NCBI GenBank assembly: GCA_964106645.2
Contig: OZ067045.1
Origin: Podarcis pityusensis
Taxonomy: Eukaryota
Reading direction: 5' to 3' (one strand)
Length of the DNA stretch: 64,000 nt
The notes under the pieces are model-generated. The model had not been told where the DNA came from. It did no database searches and saw nothing but the letters and a program-made list of their open reading frames with translations. The position numbers were made by a program, and so were the translations under genes. Positions within the stretch are counted from its first letter, which is position 1; the number at the start of each line of letters is the position of its first letter. Shown here one piece after another: positions 4,621-59,458 of this stretch.

Positions 4621-7218
4621 AACAGAGCACTAAGGTGTGGGGGGAGAAGATACCTAAGAAATAAATGGAAGAGCTGAGTTTGCTTCAGCCATTGTCAGTC
4701 TCCATGAATCTGTGCATGGATTTGATCCGGCTTAGGGGACCAATCTTTTTTGTACAGAAAACAAAACAAAAGGGGAGAGGCCCTTTAATTTTCTTAAGGC
4801 AAGGATATGAGAAGGGAACCCTTTGTGGCCGTTGCAGATATATAGGAGGTGAATAATGAAAATCAGGGTGAGTAGGAGCCCCCTGCGGAGAAGAAATTCA
4901 GTTCTGCCATCCAAGTAGGAAATGTTTTATGTGTGAGTAATAATGCGGTTTATGGTTTTCTTGTAATGCATTGTCCAAACTTTAATCTCGAATCATTTAT
5001 CAAAGTTTTCTATTGTGCTGTACTAATGGATCTCTTTAGCAAAGCAGTGAAAAAGTCTGCACCTCCAGCAAAAGTAGCAAAACTGCCATTTATCTTTCTG
5101 CAGCCCCTTTGGCAGGAAGGTGAAGGGGGGAAAAAGAGAAGAGGAAGAAGAAGTAACTTACCAGTAACAGTGACCCTGCAAAGATCTAAAGTACGGATGA
5201 ACCAGACCTCATACCTTGTTCTGATTGGGAACCTGAGGAGCCCCTCTGAGAAATGTTGCTGTTGAACCCCCCCCCCCTGCCCATTTTTGCTTCCCTTGTT
5301 TGTTTGTTTTAAATGTTTTGCTTGAGCATTCAGAAGCTGGCCTGCACTAAGTCAGACCCACTGAGCCATCTTGCCTGCTACTGTCTGCATCAAAGGTGGG
5401 ACAACTTTTTCAGCCTGGGGGCAGATATCTGAGGGCAGCGGGTGGGGTTATGCACCAGAGGTGAGTGGAGCCAGAGCCAAAATGGGTGGAGCCTATTAAA
5501 AGAGTGGTGCTGGAACAAGAGATGTGACTCTTGCCTCTGTACGTTAAGCTGCCTCCGAGTCATACAGTAATCAAAGGTTTCTATGCTCAATCCCAATACC
5601 CACACTGCCTCTCCATTCATTCTCCATCCAGACAGGCGGAAGGCAAAATGACTCCAGGAGGATGTGGAGCAGAGCCAATGAGAGGCACGAGTTGGGGGAA
5701 GGTGCATGGCCTGAGGACCAAATAGATAGGCATGGAGACCCAGATTTGGACCATGGGTAGGAGAACTTTTGGGGGTCACATGCTACAGGTGGTTGGAGCC
5801 AGAGACAAAGTGAGTGGGACCTCTGTACAGTAGTTTAGTTTCTACAGTCACTTGTGGCCCTCTCTGTCCTTCATCCAGACAAGCAAGAGGCTGAGCTCAA
5901 GGCCACCTTCCAGTCTGGCCAAAACATCCAAGGGCAATAGGAAGGCAAGCTGGTTAGGTGTGAGGTGTTGCATAAAGGGAGTGTGGCCTGGGGAGGGGAG
6001 TGTGGCCTGAGGGAATTCCAAAGGGCTGCACATAGAGGTCTGGTGGGTTGCATTTGCTCCCACCTGAGTTTCTCCAGCCCTGGCTGAGAGGGGCTTTCCA
6101 TCATTTCAGGTGAGAGCCTTTCCCAGCCCTGCTGGAAGATGCTGGGCATTAAACCTGGAACCTTCTCTATGCAAGGCACACATTCTGTCACTGAACGATG
6201 GACACTTCTCCACCTAGGGGCAGTCCACTCATTAGCTTCGGTGAGGCCATCATCTCAGGTGGCAGGATGGAGCCAGCTGGGAGGAGTAGAAAATCTGGGT
6301 CCTTGATGAGTGTGCCTCCTGCTTTTGTCATCCATGGCTGCCACCTGGGAAGAGCAGGGTCCCAACTGAGGCCACTTTCCCCTCTCTGGACTCATTTTTT
6401 CTCCCCCACTGCCATCGGCACACCAGGATCTTCCTGCCTCACCCCCCTCCAGTTGTCTCAGGCAGCAACAGAGGAGGAGGAAGAAGAGGAGGCAGTGGGT
6501 GTGTGTGTGCCATTTTCTGTTTTGCCTCAAGTGGCAAAATGCCTTGGGCTGGGCCAGCCCTCCCCCCAAGGACTAGGGACATAGGAAGCTAGCGTGTGCT
6601 AATGTCTTTGCAGGGTTCATGTGTTTGCCTACACAGAAGTCAGAAAAGCCTATCTGGTTTCTCCCAGACAATTGCATCCTTTCTTTACTTGTGCCATGAA
6701 ACCTTCATGGACTGAAGAGCAAAAGCAAAAAAATCACTTTTCTCAGAAAAGCAAATGAATGAGAAACTCTTTCTTCTTTCATGGCTTAGTTACAGAGAGG
6801 TGGAAGGGGGGGGGGAGAGACATATTTTTAGCACTTGGGTTTTCATGAAAATGTATAAAACACCTCCATCTTACTCCTGATTTATTATTGTATTAGGCAA
6901 AACCAACACACAGTACATAAAACAGTGAGCATTGGCTGCTCTTAACCTGATCTAGCTTGTTATCTGTGGTTCTGAGTACATTTTATAACCCTGGCTGTCG
7001 AATTGGAAAAGGGGAAAAAAATAAATAAAAGAGGGGGGCAATACAAGCATCAATCTCCCGGATAAAAATCAGACCACTTTCTACCACAGTTTGACCTTAG
7101 TGATGCCTTTGGATAGTCTTACTTGTCTAAGTCCTCACAGCAATTACCAAGGGACAGTTTGAAAATGGAGCTTTTATGGTGAGGTCTGGAATTACCAGCT
7201 GCAGCAAAGTCTTAAGGA

Positions 7219-8055: not shown

Positions 8056-9556
8056 TCATCCTCTCGAATCAAAAGTGGGAGCAGGCAAGCTTCCTGCCCC
8101 AATAAAAGAAGTCAAAAGTACTTGGAACCCAATTATGGGTCTAAAGCTGAGGTAAAAAGGAAAGGACTTGCCTAGATAAAGATGGCACTTGGAAAGCCTC
8201 CCTTGAGAGAGCATTCCACAAGCAGGGAGCCACCACTGAAGAGGCCTGCTTTGATATTGCCAACCTGCAGGCCTCCCAAGGCAGGGCTGGGTGATAAATA
8301 GCACTTTGAGCCTCAGAGGAATCAGACTGTTCCACACTCTTGTTTCTGGAGATAATCTTGTACCGCTGGAGTACTGGTGCTGGCAGTCATCCCTTATCTA
8401 AATTCCTAGTAAAATATTTGAAACATTAAAAAAAATCGAAAAATGCACATGGGAGAGCTAGACCAGGGAACCATGACTATATTAAATTGCTTTAGAAAGA
8501 ATTTAACAGTTCGAAGATCTGACACAAGGAATGTTTGAAGGAAAGACAATTTCCCCTTCATTTTTTTCAAACAATTTCTTCAAAGATAGTGACTTTATTT
8601 TAGTGTTTAATTTTACGCTCTGGAAAAAAAACTTGTTTTTAAAAATCGACAGATAATAACTGTAAGGGGGGGAATGAAAAAGAAACGAGCAATTTTGAGC
8701 CCTTTTACTGTAGAGGGGATGATTATTAAGATAAATACCAGGCAAAAAGAATCTGGAGTTAATTATATTCCATATAATCAGACATTGGTTGACTTGTAAT
8801 TTATTGCTCCCTAATTTGCATTTATTATCAAAGATAATCCATTTCCAGGAAGTGCAAAATAACATGATATAAGTAGTGATCAGGAAGGCATGCTTTTAGC
8901 TAACTTCAAAACTCTGCTCTAGTCTTTTCAGAACCAATTACATACAATTTCAGGAAATAACACACCAAAGGCTCTCAGGCAGCTTGTAATTGTCAGTGCA
9001 AAAAATAAAAATAAAAATAAAAGAAGAAGTTCTTTGGGTTGGAAAATATCGTGATTTCCAACAGAAGGTATTCATTCTCTGAGTGTTATAAAAATACACC
9101 AAAGCAGGTGGACTAATGTAGCTGTCAGAAGCAGAACATTTGTAGAGTTGAGGCCTGTGCTTGGATCCTGTTCAGGCGCAAACAAGGAAAAAAAAAATCA
9201 GTAGAACTATAAGTTCTTACCAACAAAGCAAAACAAAACAAAATTGGCAAGCATCTCTGCCTTGAATTAAGACCTGCCTTCTATTGAAGACCAGCTAATT
9301 AATCTCTGCAGAACACCAAGGACTGCAGACTTTGTTATAACGTGCAAGCTGGGTTTGGCATGCAATGTACTATCACCTTTTTCCTGGAGTGAATCAAGAT
9401 AATAAAAAAGAAAAGAAAACCATTGGGGTGATTCAGTCTCTCCCAACTTTTTTCGGACTGATGCATGGGATTGCCCTTCTGCCACCGCCTTTCAAAGCTG
9501 CCATTACCTGCAGACAGCTGTGCCTGCCTGTCTGCATTTGCACTGTGAACCATGCC

Positions 9557-37700: not shown

Positions 37701-38130
37701 GGGATCTCTGGGTCTTCCTGTCTGCACACTGTCACGCCAAGTATGTCACTGAGCTTCAAACAAAACAGAGCCACTCCTTTCGATGTTTCTCCCTCTTAGC
37801 TGGCAAAACTCCAGGAAAGTGCCCCACCCTGGTGGCACCCAGGTGCATAGGTTCCTCCCCCTCCTGATCCTCTTGGGGCCAGTGGCTCACACCCTTTGCT
37901 GGTGCGTATGCTCTGGGGCTTCCTGGGCTTGCCTGTCCTCAGCGTACCCTGGCACGCTCCTGTAGTCTCAGTCTTCTCTGCAAAGAGGCTTGCCCCACTG
38001 CTTGCAGCATAGTCTGTGTGGGCTACTGGCAGTTGATAAGAGAATGACGGAGGGCGAGCCGGAGCCCTGCCAATGCTCTCGAGAAGTGCAAAATACCACA
38101 AATAGAGAAGGGAGCAGTTCATCAGGTGAT

Positions 38131-39389
38131 GATTGTTCGGACCAACTGGCAGGAATCTTTACGAAGATTTTTAACCAGTCTCTGGCCCAAGCCACTGTTC
38201 CACCCTGTCTGAAATCCACTACCATTATACCCCTGCCAAAAACATCAAAGATAGACAGTCTGAATGATTTTCGCCCTGTGGCATTGACACCCATTATAAT
38301 GAAATGTTTCGAAAAACTGGTGAGGAACTGCATCTTATCTTGTCTGCCAGTGGGACTTGACCCTTACCAGTTTGCGTACAAGGCAAAGAGATCCACAGAG
38401 GATGCTGTGGCAATGGCTTTACATGCTGTCCTGACTCATTTGGAGAAGCAAGGGAACTACGCGAGACTGTTATTTGTAGACTTTAGTTCTGCATTTAATA
38501 CTATTCTTCCGCATAGATTGGTGTCCAAATTATTAGACCTGGGACTTCCACCATGTTTGTGCAGGTGGATATTAGACTTTCTATCAAACCGTTCCCAAAG
38601 GGTCAGGTTGGGTTCCCACGTCTCTGCGGATCTCATCATGAATACGGGGACACCGCAGGGGTGTGTGTTGAGCCTGCTTTTATACACACTCTATACAGCT
38701 GACTGTGCCCCCCAAATACCCCAGTAATAAGATCATTAAGTTCACAGATGATACAACGGTGGTTGGTTTAATTACGGCTGGAGAGGGGGAGACGGCCTAT
38801 AGGAAGGAAGTTGAGCGGTTGGGGGAGTGGTGGAGGAAAAACAACTTACTGCTTAACTTAAAGAAAACAAAAGAGATCATTGTGGACTTTAGGAAATGTA
38901 AATTTAATATTCAGCCACTTATTATTGAGGGGAAGTGCGTGGAACAGGTCTCAGTGTTTCGATTTCTGGGAATGGAATTGAGAGACGACCTAACCTGGGG
39001 AGAGAACAGCAAAGACCTGGTGAAGAGAGCACAGCAGAGGTTATATTTTCGGAGAATCCTCCGGAAAAACAATCTCTCAAAGGACCTGTTGATGGCATTC
39101 TACCATTGCACTGTGGAGAGTGTACTAACTTATGGTCTGTGCGTGTGGTTTGGGAGCTGCACGGCCAGGGAAAAAACAATGCTATCCAGGGTTGTAAAGA
39201 CTGCAGAGAGAATTATTGGGTGCACTCTTCCCACCTTAGATCAAATCTATGCTGCCAGGTGCCATAAGAAAGCGGCAGAGATAGCACATGATAGTACGCA
39301 CCCCAGAAATGATCTCTTTCAGCTTCTGCCTTCTGGAAGAATGTATAGAGTTATAAAGGCCAGGACTAGCCGCCTGAAAAACAGTTTCT
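38131..39389 (+). pseudogene. Rex-Babar reverse transcriptase ORF, disrupted
   Basis: Track ORFs 37990-38727 and 38705-39415 join through a one-base frameshift in the C-run at about 38708-38713. The catalytic motif reads FTDD at 38741-38752. The endonuclease domain is absent (5' truncation). The last codons are displaced to 41606-41640. Confidence 0.9.
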
Positions 39390-39998
39390 TTTTTTTTTTT
39401 AATGATATTTATTAAGAATTTTAAAGTTACAGAAAAAACAAAAAGAAAAAGAAAAAACATAAGAAAAACAAACCACAATCAAACAATACAAATTGATAAA
39501 AATCAAAATCAAAAAAATAAGAACAAAGCACGTAATACAACACAATCAAAAAACAAAAATAAGCCACAAACATTTAAAAAACAAGTCCAATATTCTCAAA
39601 TCCTTGACTGTTATTACCTTCTTTCTTTGACCTCCTCACTCCTCCCTTTTTTTTTGTATCCTAGTTGTTAATCGTCACAGCAAATCTTTTCCATTTTTCA
39701 TAATATTCTATCATTACATTACCTTAATCTATTTTAACCTTATCTTACTATAAAAGACCCTAAAACTTGAAACTTAGATCTTATTTATACCAATTTCTCA
39801 TAACCATAACATATTCTTACATAATTCTTTTAACATTTTTGCTAAAGCCAGATGATTTCGTTCCAACATTTTTCTAACATTCATCAATTTTATAAAGCAA
39901 TCCTAATAAAAAAAAAATTTTCTTCCAATCTTCATCCAGCGTCTCTTCCTCCTGGTCCTGGGTTTTGTCAGTCCTTTCTATCCCATCAATCTAGTGCA

Positions 39999-40631
39999 TT
40001 AACCTGGTAATCTTATGTCCGAGGCCCTTAAGTCTCTTCCATGTCCCTTCCGTGGCTCTTCTTCATATTTATACCTGTACTTTACTTTGTCTCCTGCTCC
40101 TTTCACTCGTGGGAACTCCAACTTGACAGTGTTTTTGACCCTTCTCAACAAATCAGTCCCTTTTCCATATTCCACACTAAACTCCATGTGGTATTTAAAA
40201 GCATGTTTCAAAGTCCCTCCAGAATTAAGAGCCCCCACAACCCCAAACATCTCACGACCCATTGCCAGACTTGAAAAGTCCAAACATCCCTGCATAGGGG
40301 GGTCTATCCAACCCCCCATTTCCAAACCAAACCAAACTTTATCTTTCCAAATCTGGCTTTTTCCAAGTTCATTTGTCAGATCCAAGAGTTCATGTTCCTG
40401 CTGGGCCACATCTCCCTCCATCTCTGGCGCCCGAGGTTCAGCAACATCCTCTTCCCTCATCTGATCTGTCAGAGCACACTCCTGGTTTGATTCCTGGGTG
40501 GGCTCTATGTAGTTTCCCACTACCTGTCCAAAATTTCTGATCGCAGCAGTCATCAAGTCCGTCTTCTCATGTAGCTGTTCTAGTAGGGCACTTGTTTTGC
40601 AGAAAGCACGCACCAGAGCTTCTGGATACAT
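39999..40631 (-). CDS. 210-aa ORF of the L1-type insert; unknown function, in the ORF1 position
   Basis: ATG-initiated, uninterrupted, and in the sense orientation of the element. Predicted helical/acidic N-half (EQLHEK..., QQEHELLDLTNEL) and basic C-terminus. No canonical L1 ORF1 RRM motif recognised. Confidence 0.55.
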   Translation of the reverse strand: MYPEALVRAFCKTSALLEQLHEKTDLMTAAIRNFGQVVGNYIEPTQESNQECALTDQMREEDVAEPRAPEMEGDVAQQEHELLDLTNELGKSQIWKDKVWFGLEMGGWIDPPMQGCLDFSSLAMGREMFGVVGALNSGGTLKHAFKYHMEFSVEYGKGTDLLRRVKNTVKLEFPRVKGAGDKVKYRYKYEEEPRKGHGRDLRASDIRLPG

Positions 40632-41259
40632 TGTTCTGCAAGGTCAGAAGTCTATTCCCACGATCGTAATCTGTTGCAGCTGCAGAGCTCCCCGATTCAG
40701 ATTTAGTAACAGTTTCACAGGCTCCCTCTAGGGGAAAAACTTCTATTTGTTCTTTTCTTTTAAAGGCAGATCTAGCAACAAAGTTTCCTTTTTCAGATAT
40801 TTTGTCTATATTTGTTCCTTTAAAATGCGAAAGAGAACAATGGAATCACTATATTTCTCTTCTTTTAACTATCTGTCAAAGACGTTTGTCTCTGGTCAAT
40901 GAGCTTCCCAATGAACGTCAGTCCTGACACCCCGCTCCTAGGATCAAGATGGTGGAAAATTACTTTGCTTTACACTCTCTTCTGCAGGTTTAAACAGTCC
41001 GGAAAAAATCCCCCCTCTTCTCCTGCTTCCGAAGGGGGTTCAACAATTTTAAATGATGAAAGTTAATCCTTTACAAGCGATTTTCTGAACTCTAGTTTGC
41101 CATGTCTTTGCTTTAATCTATCTACAAGAAACGGAAGGCTGACTTCCTGTTTAGACCTTCCCGTTTCAGTGCCAAATTGAGATGAATTTCTTAGTCCAAT
41201 TTTCCTTTCTACTCGCAGGTCATTATTTATAGTCCAATTGTCCGAAATTAAAGTACTCA

Positions 41260-41589
41260 CGGGTGATTGTTTTAAAAGCCAAATTGTCCCAGGAAAAAGG
41301 CAGCGCTCTCCGGCAACGGCTGTGCGGCTTCGCTCCACGGAAGAAGCAGTTGACTCTCAGCACCGTGCCACTTCCCCCTCTTCGCTCCGGAGTCCATAAG
41401 TGGGTTCCTGTACGGGTTGGGGGGGCGCTAAAGGTGCCCGCCGAGTCCCATGGTCACAGGCTTCATCCGCCTGTGATTTTTGAAAGGGTCCCCGCTTCGC
41501 CATAGCGGGAAAGACCCGTTTTCCGTGGAGCTGGTCCCTCCGAATCAGAGGGAATCCGCCATTACCAATGGCACCACCCCGGAAGTCCT
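41260..41589 (-). promoter_or_regulatory. CpG-rich internal Pol II promoter (5' UTR) of the L1-type insert
   Basis: ETS-type ACTTCCGG at the very 5' end. YY1-type AATGGCGG (plus-strand CCGCCATT at 41556-41563). High CpG density versus the flanks. Confidence 0.65.
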
Positions 41590-41702
41590 CTGAAAAACAG
41601 TTTCTACACTAATGCAATTCTGGTTCTAAACGCAGCATAAGGGGTCTCTGTAGTATAGTGTATTTTAAAATGGGGTTTTAGAGTTTTTAGGGGTTTTTGA
41701 AT

Positions 41703-41801
41703 GTTTTATGTAGTTTTGTAGTAGTTTTATGTAGTTTTTATGTAGTTTTATGTAGTTTTGTGGTAGTTTTATGTAGTTTTTATGTAGTTTTATGTAGTTT
41801 T
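41703..41801 (+). repeat. (TATGTAGTTT)-type minisatellite with a ~42-bp higher-order unit in the Rex-Babar 3' UTR
   Basis: Read directly; it explains the VLCSFVVVLCSFYV repeat in the ORF track. Confidence 0.85.
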
Positions 41802-41862
41802 CAATTTTATTGTTCCGCAAGGGACAATGACAATAAAAATATTGTATTGTATCGTATCGTAT

Positions 41863-42137
41863 CCGGTGGGAAGGAGCAAAAAGATAGTCCCTCAGAAAAT
41901 GAGGAAGAGGCAGGAGCTGACCCTCTTAGTCCCAGGTCTTGGTGTATGGGAGGGCTATAGGATAGGAGGCAGGGCAAAAGATGTCAGAGGTTAAAAATCT
42001 GTTGCTTCTGCTCTTGCCTGAATGATGGTGACGGCTGTGTTAGAGCCGTCCTGAGTTATCTGTTTGTTTTGACAATAAATCATCCTTCAATGAACTATGC
42101 TCACTGTGTTACCAAGCCAGGAATTGGACTCCTGACA
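41863..42137 (+). mobile_element. Candidate 3' part of a Gypsy-like solo LTR, interrupted by Rex-Babar
   Basis: Purine-rich U3-like tract, TTAAAA at about 41991, AATAAA at 42074-42079, and a terminal ...CCTGACA at 42137. Similar-style sequence precedes the LINE at about 37960-38128. Confidence 0.4.
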
Positions 42138-43997
42138 TCCTGGTTATCAGATCAAGTTCCCAACACCTTAAGTACCCACCACCTAAAGGACAATAAAACT
42201 ATCTGTGCATATCGTTGCCTTCTGGCCTTCCCAAGAGCTGTGGGAACACCTGGCCTCAGGAAACCCATCAATGGATGTTTGTTGTTCCCCTGTATATCCC
42301 AAGGATTATGGAGGAGGGTGGTATCCAAGTTGAGTATGTGACTTGCTTAGAGGATTATGGAGGAAGGCGATGTCCAAGTCTGTCTTTCCTTTTGAAGAAA
42401 AATGTCATTGAAATGGGGAGAATTGGTTATGGCATTGATTTTATGTGATTTTTCAAAGGTCAGTAGCCCATCAGCACTGTCAAGTACAAGGGGATACAAT
42501 TTTGACACTTTCTTGCAACAAAGCAACAAGTTTTGCCAATCAAAACCAGAAGGGATACAATTTACAAGCTTTCTCCATTATCTGCACAGCAGGGGGTGTT
42601 CAGCCAACAGTGCAAAGACTGAGCTGAAGCGTTCCCTGCTGGTTACTTGCTTTCAGCAATAGGGGTCGCTGTTTGGTAGTACCCTATTGGTGGCTCTTAC
42701 ATAATTCACAAAATACAGAGTCCATTCATAAAACACAGTGTTCATTGATAAAGCAGTAACATAAATCTCCATTGGTACATATTGGGTGTATACGTACAGG
42801 TTTATGGCCATGCTGTAGTTTAGTGCTTATGCAACTGTGAATAAAAGGTGGTTGGGCTCATTGTTCAGGGGTTTGGGGGGGGGGGAGAAGTGACAAAACT
42901 GATTTCCAATAAGTGCCCCCCTTTATTTCCATAACAAGTCCTTGGGTCTGAACTCTGAGTAGTGACACCAGGGACCTAGAAGGGGCAGGGCTTGTCAGTC
43001 CAACCACTGCACAGTCTCATCAGGTCTGGCCTTAAGGCAATTGGAGTAATTTGGACAATTAGGCCCTGTGGGCCGCTCCTAACGGGGCCCCCACACCAGG
43101 GCAATCTAGATGGATTTTATTTAGTTCTCTAAGATTTTGCAGACTTTGGCTATGAACTGGGGCCCTACAAAAAAATCCAAGTTGGACCCCAATGCTTCAA
43201 ACTGGGCCCCACTGGTTAACTCTGAGTCTCATAGTTCCTGTGCCCGAGTTGCCCTGCCCTTGCACGAAGTCTTGGGTTTGCGATTTTGGGAGAGGGGAGA
43301 CTGTGGCACTGGAGAGCAGCCAAGCTGGCGGGGGGCCCTAGATTTAGAGGCCCTAGGCTTCAGCCTACTTAACCTATACATAAATCCAGCACTCACTGGT
43401 CCCCACCTTGTTCCCCCAGATTTGAAAGCAGCTGCCTCAATCTGCCTAATGATATTTATAGCCAATAATCACAAGCAGATACCTTGCTTGGAAATTATGT
43501 CCGCAATGGAAAGTGATGGTCACAGTGGAAAGTGTGGGCTGCCATAGAAAGTGAGGGTTCCAATGGAGTGATCTGGAAAGCATCCCTATCCCACCCATGA
43601 ATAGAAGGTGATGCAGTCAAATGTAGCAGTTTGTGTCATCCATATTCCCTGGAGAAACTATTGCAAAATAACAAATGCAAAAAACTTTGCTGAGCTTAAC
43701 TTTCATAAGAATTCCAATACAGATCAAAATGGAGCTTGAAAGCTTAGAACTGGCCCCTGCTTTCCAAGACATGGCTCAGATTATTAGAGCTGTGTGCAGC
43801 TCTTTCCCCAGTTTGCCCATCGGTGGCGAACCTACATTTTGGGGGCCCTGAAGCTTGAGCTGTTATGGGGGCCTCTTTGCAACCAGTAACCACTGTTATG
43901 TTCTTCAGTGGGGTTTTTCCATAACAGATCACCACTTCTTTTTTAAAAAACTACAACTTCTCACATTTTGCTTTAAATTGCTGTACTGTGACACTTC

Positions 43998-57950: not shown

Positions 57951-58153
57951 NNNNNNNNNNNNNNNNNNNNNNNNNNNNNNNNNNNNNNNNNNNNNNNNNN
58001 NNNNNNNNNNNNNNNNNNNNNNNNNNNNNNNNNNNNNNNNNNNNNNNNNNNNNNNNNNNNNNNNNNNNNNNNNNNNNNNNNNNNNNNNNNNNNNNNNNNN
58101 NNNNNNNNNNNNNNNNNNNNNNNNNNNNNNNNNNNNNNNNNNNNNNNNNNNNN
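57951..58153. other. Assembly gap (N run)
   Basis: Run of N bases. Confidence 1.
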
Positions 58154-59326: not shown

Positions 59327-59458
59327 NNNNNNNNNNNNNNNNNNNNNNNNNNNNNNNNNNNNNNNNNNNNNNNNNNNNNNNNNNNNNNNNNNNNNNNNNN
59401 NNNNNNNNNNNNNNNNNNNNNNNNNNNNNNNNNNNNNNNNNNNNNNNNNNNNNNNNNN
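59327..59458. other. Assembly gap (N run)
   Basis: Run of N bases. Confidence 1.

Follow-up and report, generated by a model that had tools for sequence, protein, structure and literature searches.

A probable half-L1 retroposon family with a pruned ORF1 in lacertid lizards

The window analysed here is a stretch of 64,000 nt from the lizard Podarcis pityusensis (contig OZ067045.1 of assembly GCA_964106645.2). On its minus strand, at 39390-41589, it carries a complete element of 2,200 nt which is very probably a full-length copy of a non-autonomous half-L1, that is, a HAL1-kind derivative of an L1 retrotransposon, belonging to a family of lacertid lizards. In sense order the element consists of a 5' untranslated region (UTR), a pruned first open reading frame (ORF1), a short remnant of ORF2, a 3' UTR and a poly(A) tail, all enclosed by an exact 16-bp target-site duplication (TSD). 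The initial annotation had proposed a HAL1-like, non-autonomous, protein-coding family, and our data bear this out, as the ends are derived from L1, the single ORF is of ORF1 type, ORF2 is gone and copies are many.

The insertion can be read directly from the sequence. The 16-mer CTGAAAAACAGTTTCT is present in identical form at 39374-39389, on the 3' side of the element, and at 41590-41605, on its 5' side. On the minus strand the element starts at 41589 with GAGGACTTCCGGGG and ends with AATAAA (39414-39409), TATCATT and a poly(A) tail of 12 A (39401-39390). The stretch 39390-41589 is thus confirmed as a polyadenylated insertion with an exact TSD inside an L2-like long interspersed element (LINE), in the C-terminal part of its reverse transcriptase ORF. 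Read contigs from other copies of this LINE pass directly from the duplicated 16-mer into the far flank: a loose contig end at 39389 continues with letters resembling those from 41606 onward, and another at 41590 is preceded by AGGACTAGCCGC, the letters ahead of 39374. Two contig joints jump over 2215-2217 nt, which is weak because their shorter side has just 24-25 letters. In sense orientation the target site reads GT|AGAAAC, with an A-rich start resembling L1 endonuclease sites; A/T-rich sites are the type cut by this enzyme in target-primed reverse transcription. The 16-bp TSD, the tail with its AATAAA and the bottom-strand nick site 5'-TTTCT/AC had all been read correctly in the initial annotation, and its view that the element is complete rather than 5'-truncated is upheld by independent copies that have the same two ends and different TSDs.

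These copies were reached through the 210-aa ORF. A word-based protein search with it returned five relatives, at 80, 72, 62, 35 and 33% identity, and those that carry names are all "hypothetical proteins" of Podarcis lilfordi. Three copies with matching ends, full-length or 5'-truncated, are present at loci of this species, each with its own TSD of 15-19 bp at an A-rich site. One copy (L001:7079-9173) is collinear with element positions 3-2200, counted from the sense 5' end, at 85.6% identity and without intron-like gaps; it starts AAAGACTTCCGGGG, ends AATAAATATCATTT followed by an A-run, and has the TSD AAAAGTATGACTCA(C/A)GCGA at the site TT|AAAAGT. The second (L003:7085-9249) spans positions 2-2200 at about 68%, starts GGACTTCCGGG and lies, with the TSD AAATCTATGGCGTGT and the site TT|AAATCT, inside a C2H2 zinc-finger array. 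The third (L002:7889-9385) is 5'-truncated, starting near element position 835, and is flanked by the exact 16-bp TSD CAAAAGCAGCAACACT at the site CAAAAGC. In sense orientation the TSDs of the four copies therefore begin AGAAAC (window), AAAAGT, AAATCT and (C)AAAAGC, and the dinucleotides before them are GT in the window and TT in both L001 and L003. Because flanks and TSDs differ, the copies are excluded as segmental duplicates. A distant member, L008 (a contig of 1,865 nt), has the same layout, with an L1-type 5' end that includes the AATGGCGG box, a leader of 810 nt, an ORF of 215 aa and a 3' part. With a shared deletion, independent sites bearing their own TSDs and distant subfamilies built in the same way, what we see is an amplified family, as had been suspected for this locus. 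As a separate matter, the half-L1 of L003 (flanks 6985-7084 and 9250-9400) and an autonomous L1 at L006 (flank 8930-9027) both sit inside C2H2 zinc-finger coding arrays, with motifs like ECGKSF...H, two cases being too few to compare with chance.

High repetition is also evident from unassembled data. Over 39090-41680 (2,591 nt) we counted 15,717 contigs of 80-100% likeness from run X1 and 9,402 from run X5, and four public runs together gave more than 25,000, with each bin of the element covered; contig depths are not copy numbers, and the copy number is estimated from contig counts. Single variant sites within the ORF are represented by up to 78 distinct contigs, and 35-64% of the sampled 31-mers of the element are present in runs of six differently labelled organisms. 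From the contigs we estimate that each genome has at least many dozens of copies distinct in sequence, and probably hundreds or more. Within the window, self-comparison found no second copy of the element, and an Rfam scan of 38000-43000 with E up to 1 found no match. Several read contigs diverge from the window at 39892, 39957 and 39989, positions close behind the ORF stop and inside the ORF2 remnant; subfamilies may differ in their exact junction or carry other sequence at 39892-39989.

The source of the family is an autonomous L1 of lizards. When a profile of six family proteins was run against 1.8 billion representatives, only eight proteins were matched. P0006, P0007 and P0010 (182-215 aa, 26-28% identity) belong to the same length class and have the same C-terminal tail, and two others, P0009 from Podarcis raffonei and P0011 from P. 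lilfordi, are longer proteins in which an extended coiled coil precedes a block like an RNA recognition motif (RRM). P0011 lies directly upstream of Exo_endo_phos and RVT_1 ORFs in locus L006, and is therefore ORF1 of an autonomous L1. This L1 (L006:9028-15262) is 6.2 kb long and contains ORF1, Exo_endo_phos and RVT_1. By blastn, element positions 2-336 map onto L006 9028-9361 at 80%, with 423-481 next and collinear, and positions 5-485 map onto a second L1, L011 7058-7496, at 77%. At the other end, local alignment places element 1612-1745 on L006 14745-14878 with z = 18 against shuffles, and translation in the ORF2 frame gives ...EDWKK...KIDEC* for the element and ...EDWKKF...KIKEC* for L006. 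The ORF2 remnant, the last ~34 codons, occupies 39874-39978 on the minus strand in a frame different from that of the 210-aa ORF and ends at the ancestral ORF2 stop. It is followed by an AT-rich, L1-derived 3' UTR (39402-39873, minus strand, including the AATAAA), which blastn aligns with L006 14957-15262 at 66-70%. L1 and short elements both terminate AATAAATATCATT(T) followed by an A-run, and the element of the window shares its first bases, GGACTTCCGG, with the L006 L1.

The two ends of the element are hence L1-homologous, at 2-485 on the 5' side (77-80%) and at 1612-2200, the ORF2 end and 3' UTR, on the other. The deletion would begin at about codon 325 of ORF1, or slightly later, and extend to ~34 codons before the ORF2 stop, a loss of roughly 3.7 kb. 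No reverse transcriptase or endonuclease was found in the three sense frames or with Pfam, apart from the ~34-codon C-terminal remnant of ORF2, as had been noted from the start. In L011 a nested LINE splits the L1, whose 3' end falls outside the fetched locus.

Other deleted forms of L1 were met on the way. A different internally deleted L1 is found in P. raffonei (L007:10001-12172, CM049768.1), and in XP_053229072.1 (P0009, 340 aa), a RefSeq model listed as an uncharacterised protein, the N-terminus of ORF1, the coiled coil and the beginning of the RRM are fused to an ORF2 segment from beyond the reverse transcriptase. L1 deletion derivatives seem to be common in Podarcis and to be entering gene sets. 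Likewise, P0023 and P0024, gene models of Podarcis muralis for TRIM39-like E3 ligases in which Pfam recognises RING and B-box, match 52-58% of the L1 ORF1 protein (ORF1p) with 67-72% identity; either L1 ORF1 was annotated into gene models or these are real fusions.

The ORF at 40631-39999 (minus strand; 210 aa, stop included) is the sole long ORF of the element, as originally described. It had been called an orphan at that time, and this does not hold. We compared a profile of eight short-element proteins (alignment A3) by hhalign with one of eight lacertid L1 ORF1 proteins of 305-376 aa (alignment A2), one of which, P0015, bears the UniRef name 'L1 transposable element RRM domain-containing protein'. 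The two profiles match over 214 columns with a probability of 98.6% and E 8.5e-16, which identifies the ORF at the profile level as an L1 ORF1 that has been truncated and has diverged strongly. In the alignment, columns 1-216 of the family face columns 50-318 of the 357 in ORF1p. The start codon of the family corresponds to a conserved internal Met of ORF1p, so that the first ~50 residues are absent; the coiled coil is shortened, and the family has nothing that matches ~40 columns of ORF1p (roughly 209-248). Past this gap the alignment resumes, D-L-L-R-R-V-K-N...L-E-F-P-R facing D-L-V-x-L-L-R-x-N...W-E-F-P-Q. Columns 126-291 of the A2 profile match the solved human LINE-1 ORF1p chains 2ldy, 2ykp and 2yko, which cover the RRM and the C-terminal domain; the missing block therefore belongs to the second half of the RRM, and the part that aligns again to the C-terminal domain. 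No complete RRM is left, as the gap removes its second half, and one subfamily (P0004/P0005) has also lost a further ~33 residues of the first half. The protein is nevertheless of ORF1 type, though pruned. At its C-terminus the final ~12 residues (D-L-R-A-S-D-I-R-L-P-G or a close variant) hardly vary among family members; nothing in ORF1p clearly corresponds to them, and local alignments of the tail to the ORF1 3' end and to the out-of-frame ORF2 end did not rise above shuffles (z -1 to 2.7).

The coding sequence of this ORF shows signs of constraint. Ratios of non-synonymous to synonymous substitution (dN/dS, Nei-Gojobori) are 0.25-0.47 in 10 of the 10 computable pairs, at dS of 0.2-1.3, and indels between subfamilies are in frame. 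Even at 26% identity the frame is still open over ~180-215 aa and carries the same tail. Because all ten pairs give such ratios and the indels keep the frame, the comparison argues for purifying selection on the ORF in the lineages that produce copies. A maximum-likelihood tree (LG+C20+F+G4 by posterior mean site frequencies, 19 rows, none omitted, midpoint root for drawing only) separates nine short-element proteins from ten L1 ORF1 proteins by one branch with 100/100 support. The short elements fall into three deep groups, namely the window with P0001, P0002 and P0003; P0006 with P0007; and P0004 with P0005 and P0010. Long branches are flagged for P0010, P0009 and P0007, and an unrooted split is no proof of a single origin; the features that the short elements have in common, namely the internal-Met start, the gap in the RRM and the tail, point in the same direction.

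Upstream of the ORF lies a 5' UTR of 958 nt (40632-41589, minus strand), in which the first ~485 nt (41105-41588) share homology with the 5' end of autonomous L1s. The CpG-rich start with ETS and YY1 motifs that had been reported for it is found again: over the first 400 nt GC is 0.49-0.59 and CpG observed/expected 0.73-1.01, falling to 0.1-0.5 further in, and the ETS-type core CTTCCGG (sense 6-12) and the ATGGCG core (sense 29-34) are kept in all copies and in autonomous L1s. Seven aligned 5' ends, from short elements and L1s, all begin (G)GACTTCCGG. The terminal block at 41550-41589 (minus strand), with CTTCCGG, an ATTGG/GCCAT box and the AATGGCGG box as a YY1-type core, is a putative internal promoter or start-site determinant. 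In human L1 a YY1 site near the start fixes the site of initiation. The first 340 nt of the window element (41250-41589) have 83% and 78% identity to the L1s at L006:9028-9367 and L011:7054-7393, and only 71% and 75% to the half-L1s at L003:7085-7424 and L008, whereas in the ORF and the 3' part the grouping is the opposite, the short elements clustering together. The promoter module may thus be under strong common constraint, or may have been exchanged between L1 and half-L1, seven sequences being too few to choose between the two.

We also noticed an inverted repeat, TCCCTC-N7-GAGGGA, at 41532-41553 (sense +37 to +58), just downstream of the AATGGCGG box. It is conserved in all half-L1 and L1 5' ends (window, L001, L003, L006, L008), and pairing is kept in its variants, TTCCTCC...GGAGGAA in L003 and TCCCTCCGAGCTCCGGAGGGA in L008. 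This repeat could be a hairpin in RNA or DNA, or a palindromic factor site.

Two simpler accounts of the insertion can be considered together, and both are highly improbable. An internal deletion that a 6-kb L1 suffered once and by chance, at this locus or during one insertion, with no family behind it, would account for the collinearity with the L006 L1, and other internally deleted L1s, such as L007 in P. raffonei, do exist. It is rejected on the four independent sites with the same architecture and ends and different TSDs; the same layout also recurs in distant subfamilies such as L008, and thousands of contigs lie on the ORF part that is not shared with L1s. The initial annotation had named as its own undoing an element collinear with a 6-7 kb L1 and carrying a deletion unique to the locus. 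Collinearity with a 6.2-kb L1 is indeed what we find, and the second part fails because the deletion is common to all family members. A processed retrocopy of a lineage-specific host mRNA, or a host gene family unrelated to transposons, has scarcely more to recommend it. The layout (5' UTR, ORF, 3' UTR, AATAAA, poly(A), TSD) is that of an mRNA, and the ORF has no match in Pfam, the Protein Data Bank (PDB) or the ESM Atlas; against this, both termini and the ORF are homologous to autonomous L1, every copy seen is an intronless insertion with a TSD, and repetition is very high. An origin as host-gene processed pseudogene was rejected for the L1 derivation, the high repetition and the purifying selection on the ORF, and no spliced parent gene was found.

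More serious, though still unlikely, is the possibility that the half-L1 family is real and its ORF a decaying relic without a role, so that mobilisation would depend solely on the promoter, the poly(A) and perhaps the act of translation. Several observations favour it, and the same ones weigh against the protein-coding part of our interpretation. Half of the RRM is deleted, and in one subfamily it is nearly gone; since the RRM is not intact, an RNA-chaperone role like that of ORF1p is doubtful. At the DNA level the ORF is no more conserved than the UTRs, and the copies used for dN/dS came through a protein database and were thereby pre-selected for open frames. Fold prediction fails: an AlphaFold2 model from a 6-sequence alignment has a predicted local distance difference test score (pLDDT) of 34, with only an N-terminal helix at 4-41 suggested. 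A PDB profile search with the family (E up to 10) gave no match, Pfam searches with the ORF alone and with six members (E up to 10) no meaningful one, and the best ESM Atlas feature score, 0.78, is below the useful level. The protein product is a prediction, and the ~70 nt coding the conserved tail are not traceable to a source by alignment. Further points bear on the family as a whole. Its copy number comes from contig counts. Transcription is a prediction too: no listed run is recorded as RNA, and those guessed to be RNA contain just 5% of the element's words. Nor do the fetched loci show a partner L1 with an intact ORF2, L006 being frameshifted and L011 interrupted. What speaks against a relic is that dN/dS is low in every pair, including those with dS near 1, that subfamilies differ by in-frame indels, and that members with as little as 26% identity still have the same start, length and 12-residue C-terminal tail.

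If the element is a half-L1, as we prefer, its history and life cycle might be pictured as follows. An ancestral L1 would have lost ~3.7 kb and kept its 5' terminus, a shortened ORF1, the 3' UTR and the poly(A) signal. Having lost its reverse transcriptase, the element must borrow the enzyme from complete L1s. RNA polymerase II would start at the conserved first G, driven by the ETS/YY1-type block downstream of it, and the RNA would be polyadenylated at the conserved signal. The ORF2 protein (ORF2p) of a complete L1 would then nick A/T-rich sites and reverse-transcribe the half-L1 RNA in trans from its poly(A), producing TSDs of 15-19 bp and an occasional 5' truncation; the poly(A) tail, TSDs of this length and the truncated copy at L002 are consistent with such mobilisation. 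As to the pruned ORF1 protein, it probably works in cis, on the RNA that encodes it. Our best guess is that the retained coiled coil would assemble with itself or with full-length L1 ORF1p and so bring the RNA into an L1-type particle near ORF2p.

Docking gives this leading guess of co-assembly with L1 ORF1p weak support. The first 100 residues of P0001, docked with two copies of the coiled coil of P0015 (residues 50-170) from the same species, scored 0.42 against 0.01 for the best control, in a range (0.60 or under) where 5 of 78 solved complexes reached the mark, as did all 4 mismatches that passed. Over the full range 51 of the 78 solved complexes reached the mark, compared with 2 of 108 mismatched pairs. 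At least 88% of contacts are the same between runs, and the pLDDT of the partner is at least 67. It should be noted, however, that the helices of P0001 and P0015 are homologous, and the pass may therefore reflect likeness only.

A bolder picture, which we put forward tentatively and consider doubtful as a whole, is that half-L1 could be a long-lived parasite of L1 at the protein level. A minimal ORF1 with a disabled RRM would co-assemble with ORF1p on its own RNA and steal ORF2p; through divergence to 26% identity it would have kept the helix for trimerisation, some of the C-terminal domain and an invariant tail of its own, and the 5' promoter module would be exchanged or co-evolving with that of L1.

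The surroundings of the insertion can be described briefly. The upstream part of the reverse transcriptase ORF of the host L2-like LINE lies on the plus strand at 37990-39389, with RVT_1 at 3e-19 (37990-38727) and PF09004 plus the end of RVT_1 (38705-39415). Its remainder, past the insertion, occupies 41590-41801 on the plus strand, with a (GTTTTATGTA)n tail at 41703-41801, and read contigs from copies without the insertion join the two halves. This LINE has an open frame in the reverse transcriptase region, with ORFs of 245 aa and 236 aa, and is also highly repeated among the read contigs. Runs of N are present in the window at 57951-58153 (203 bases) and 59327-59458 (132 bases).

For transposon biology the interest of the family lies in a minimal and constrained ORF1, which is unsurprising in principle. 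It offers a natural deletion series, in which the coiled coil is kept, half or nearly all of the RRM is lost and a new tail is present, under purifying selection. It thereby becomes testable what an RNA needs besides ORF2p to be retrotransposed efficiently, and which portions of ORF1p have to be supplied in cis. On the practical side, ORFs of this kind, now "hypothetical proteins" in Podarcis annotation, should be repeat-masked.

Among known systems the autonomous lacertid L1s (L006 and L011; P0015) are the closest. They share with the element the first bases, the 5' ~480 nt (77-83%), ORF1, the ORF2 end, the 3' UTR, the context of the poly(A) signal and the type of target site; unlike them, the element lacks ~3.7 kb including endonuclease and reverse transcriptase, and its ORF1 has 210 aa instead of 355-376, with about 24% identity. 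L1TD1 is a mammalian host gene domesticated from L1 ORF1, for which interference with, or binding to, the L1 ORF1p trimer was proposed (PMC4161310). It resembles the lacertid ORF in its ORF1 origin, its retained coiled coil and its fast evolution, but is a single-copy host gene, while the lacertid ORF belongs to a high-copy mobile element with TSDs and poly(A), whose copy in the window lies within another LINE and gives no sign of domestication. Processed pseudogenes and retroposons of the SVA/Alu type are alike in being mobilised in trans by L1 ORF2p, as the element presumably is, and in poly(A), 15-19-bp TSDs and occasional 5' truncation. In contrast to them, the element has the 5' terminus of L1 itself and an L1-derived gene under selection, and does not come from a small RNA or a host mRNA.

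The nearest parallel in kind is provided by the HAL1 families of mammals (HAL1, HAL1B and HAL1M8 in Repbase; Smit 1999 and Bao and Jurka 2010, as cited in passages of PMC5753468 and PMC4161310). Half-L1 elements arose several times in mammals (PMC5753468), and HAL1s are among the elements that likely use L1 machinery (PMC4161310). In the literature searched, of incomplete coverage and with Dfam and Repbase outside its scope, we found no description of a HAL1-like family in lizards or other squamates; within that literature half-L1 had been described for mammals only, and the lacertid family represents the same evolutionary route outside them. Both are non-autonomous L1 derivatives that keep the ends of L1, encode only an ORF1-type protein and form families of their own, and mobilisation by L1 ORF2p is presumed for both. 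The lacertid element differs in its independent origin from a lizard L1 and in an ORF1 pruned of its N-terminal ~50 residues and parts of the coiled coil and RRM, with a new conserved tail, while the ORF1 of mammalian HAL1 is presumably intact. Since the nearest L1 is that of lizards and the named relatives are all lacertid, the family stands outside the mammalian HAL1 lineage and common descent with it is not expected: it is a HAL1-like family of independent, non-mammalian origin.

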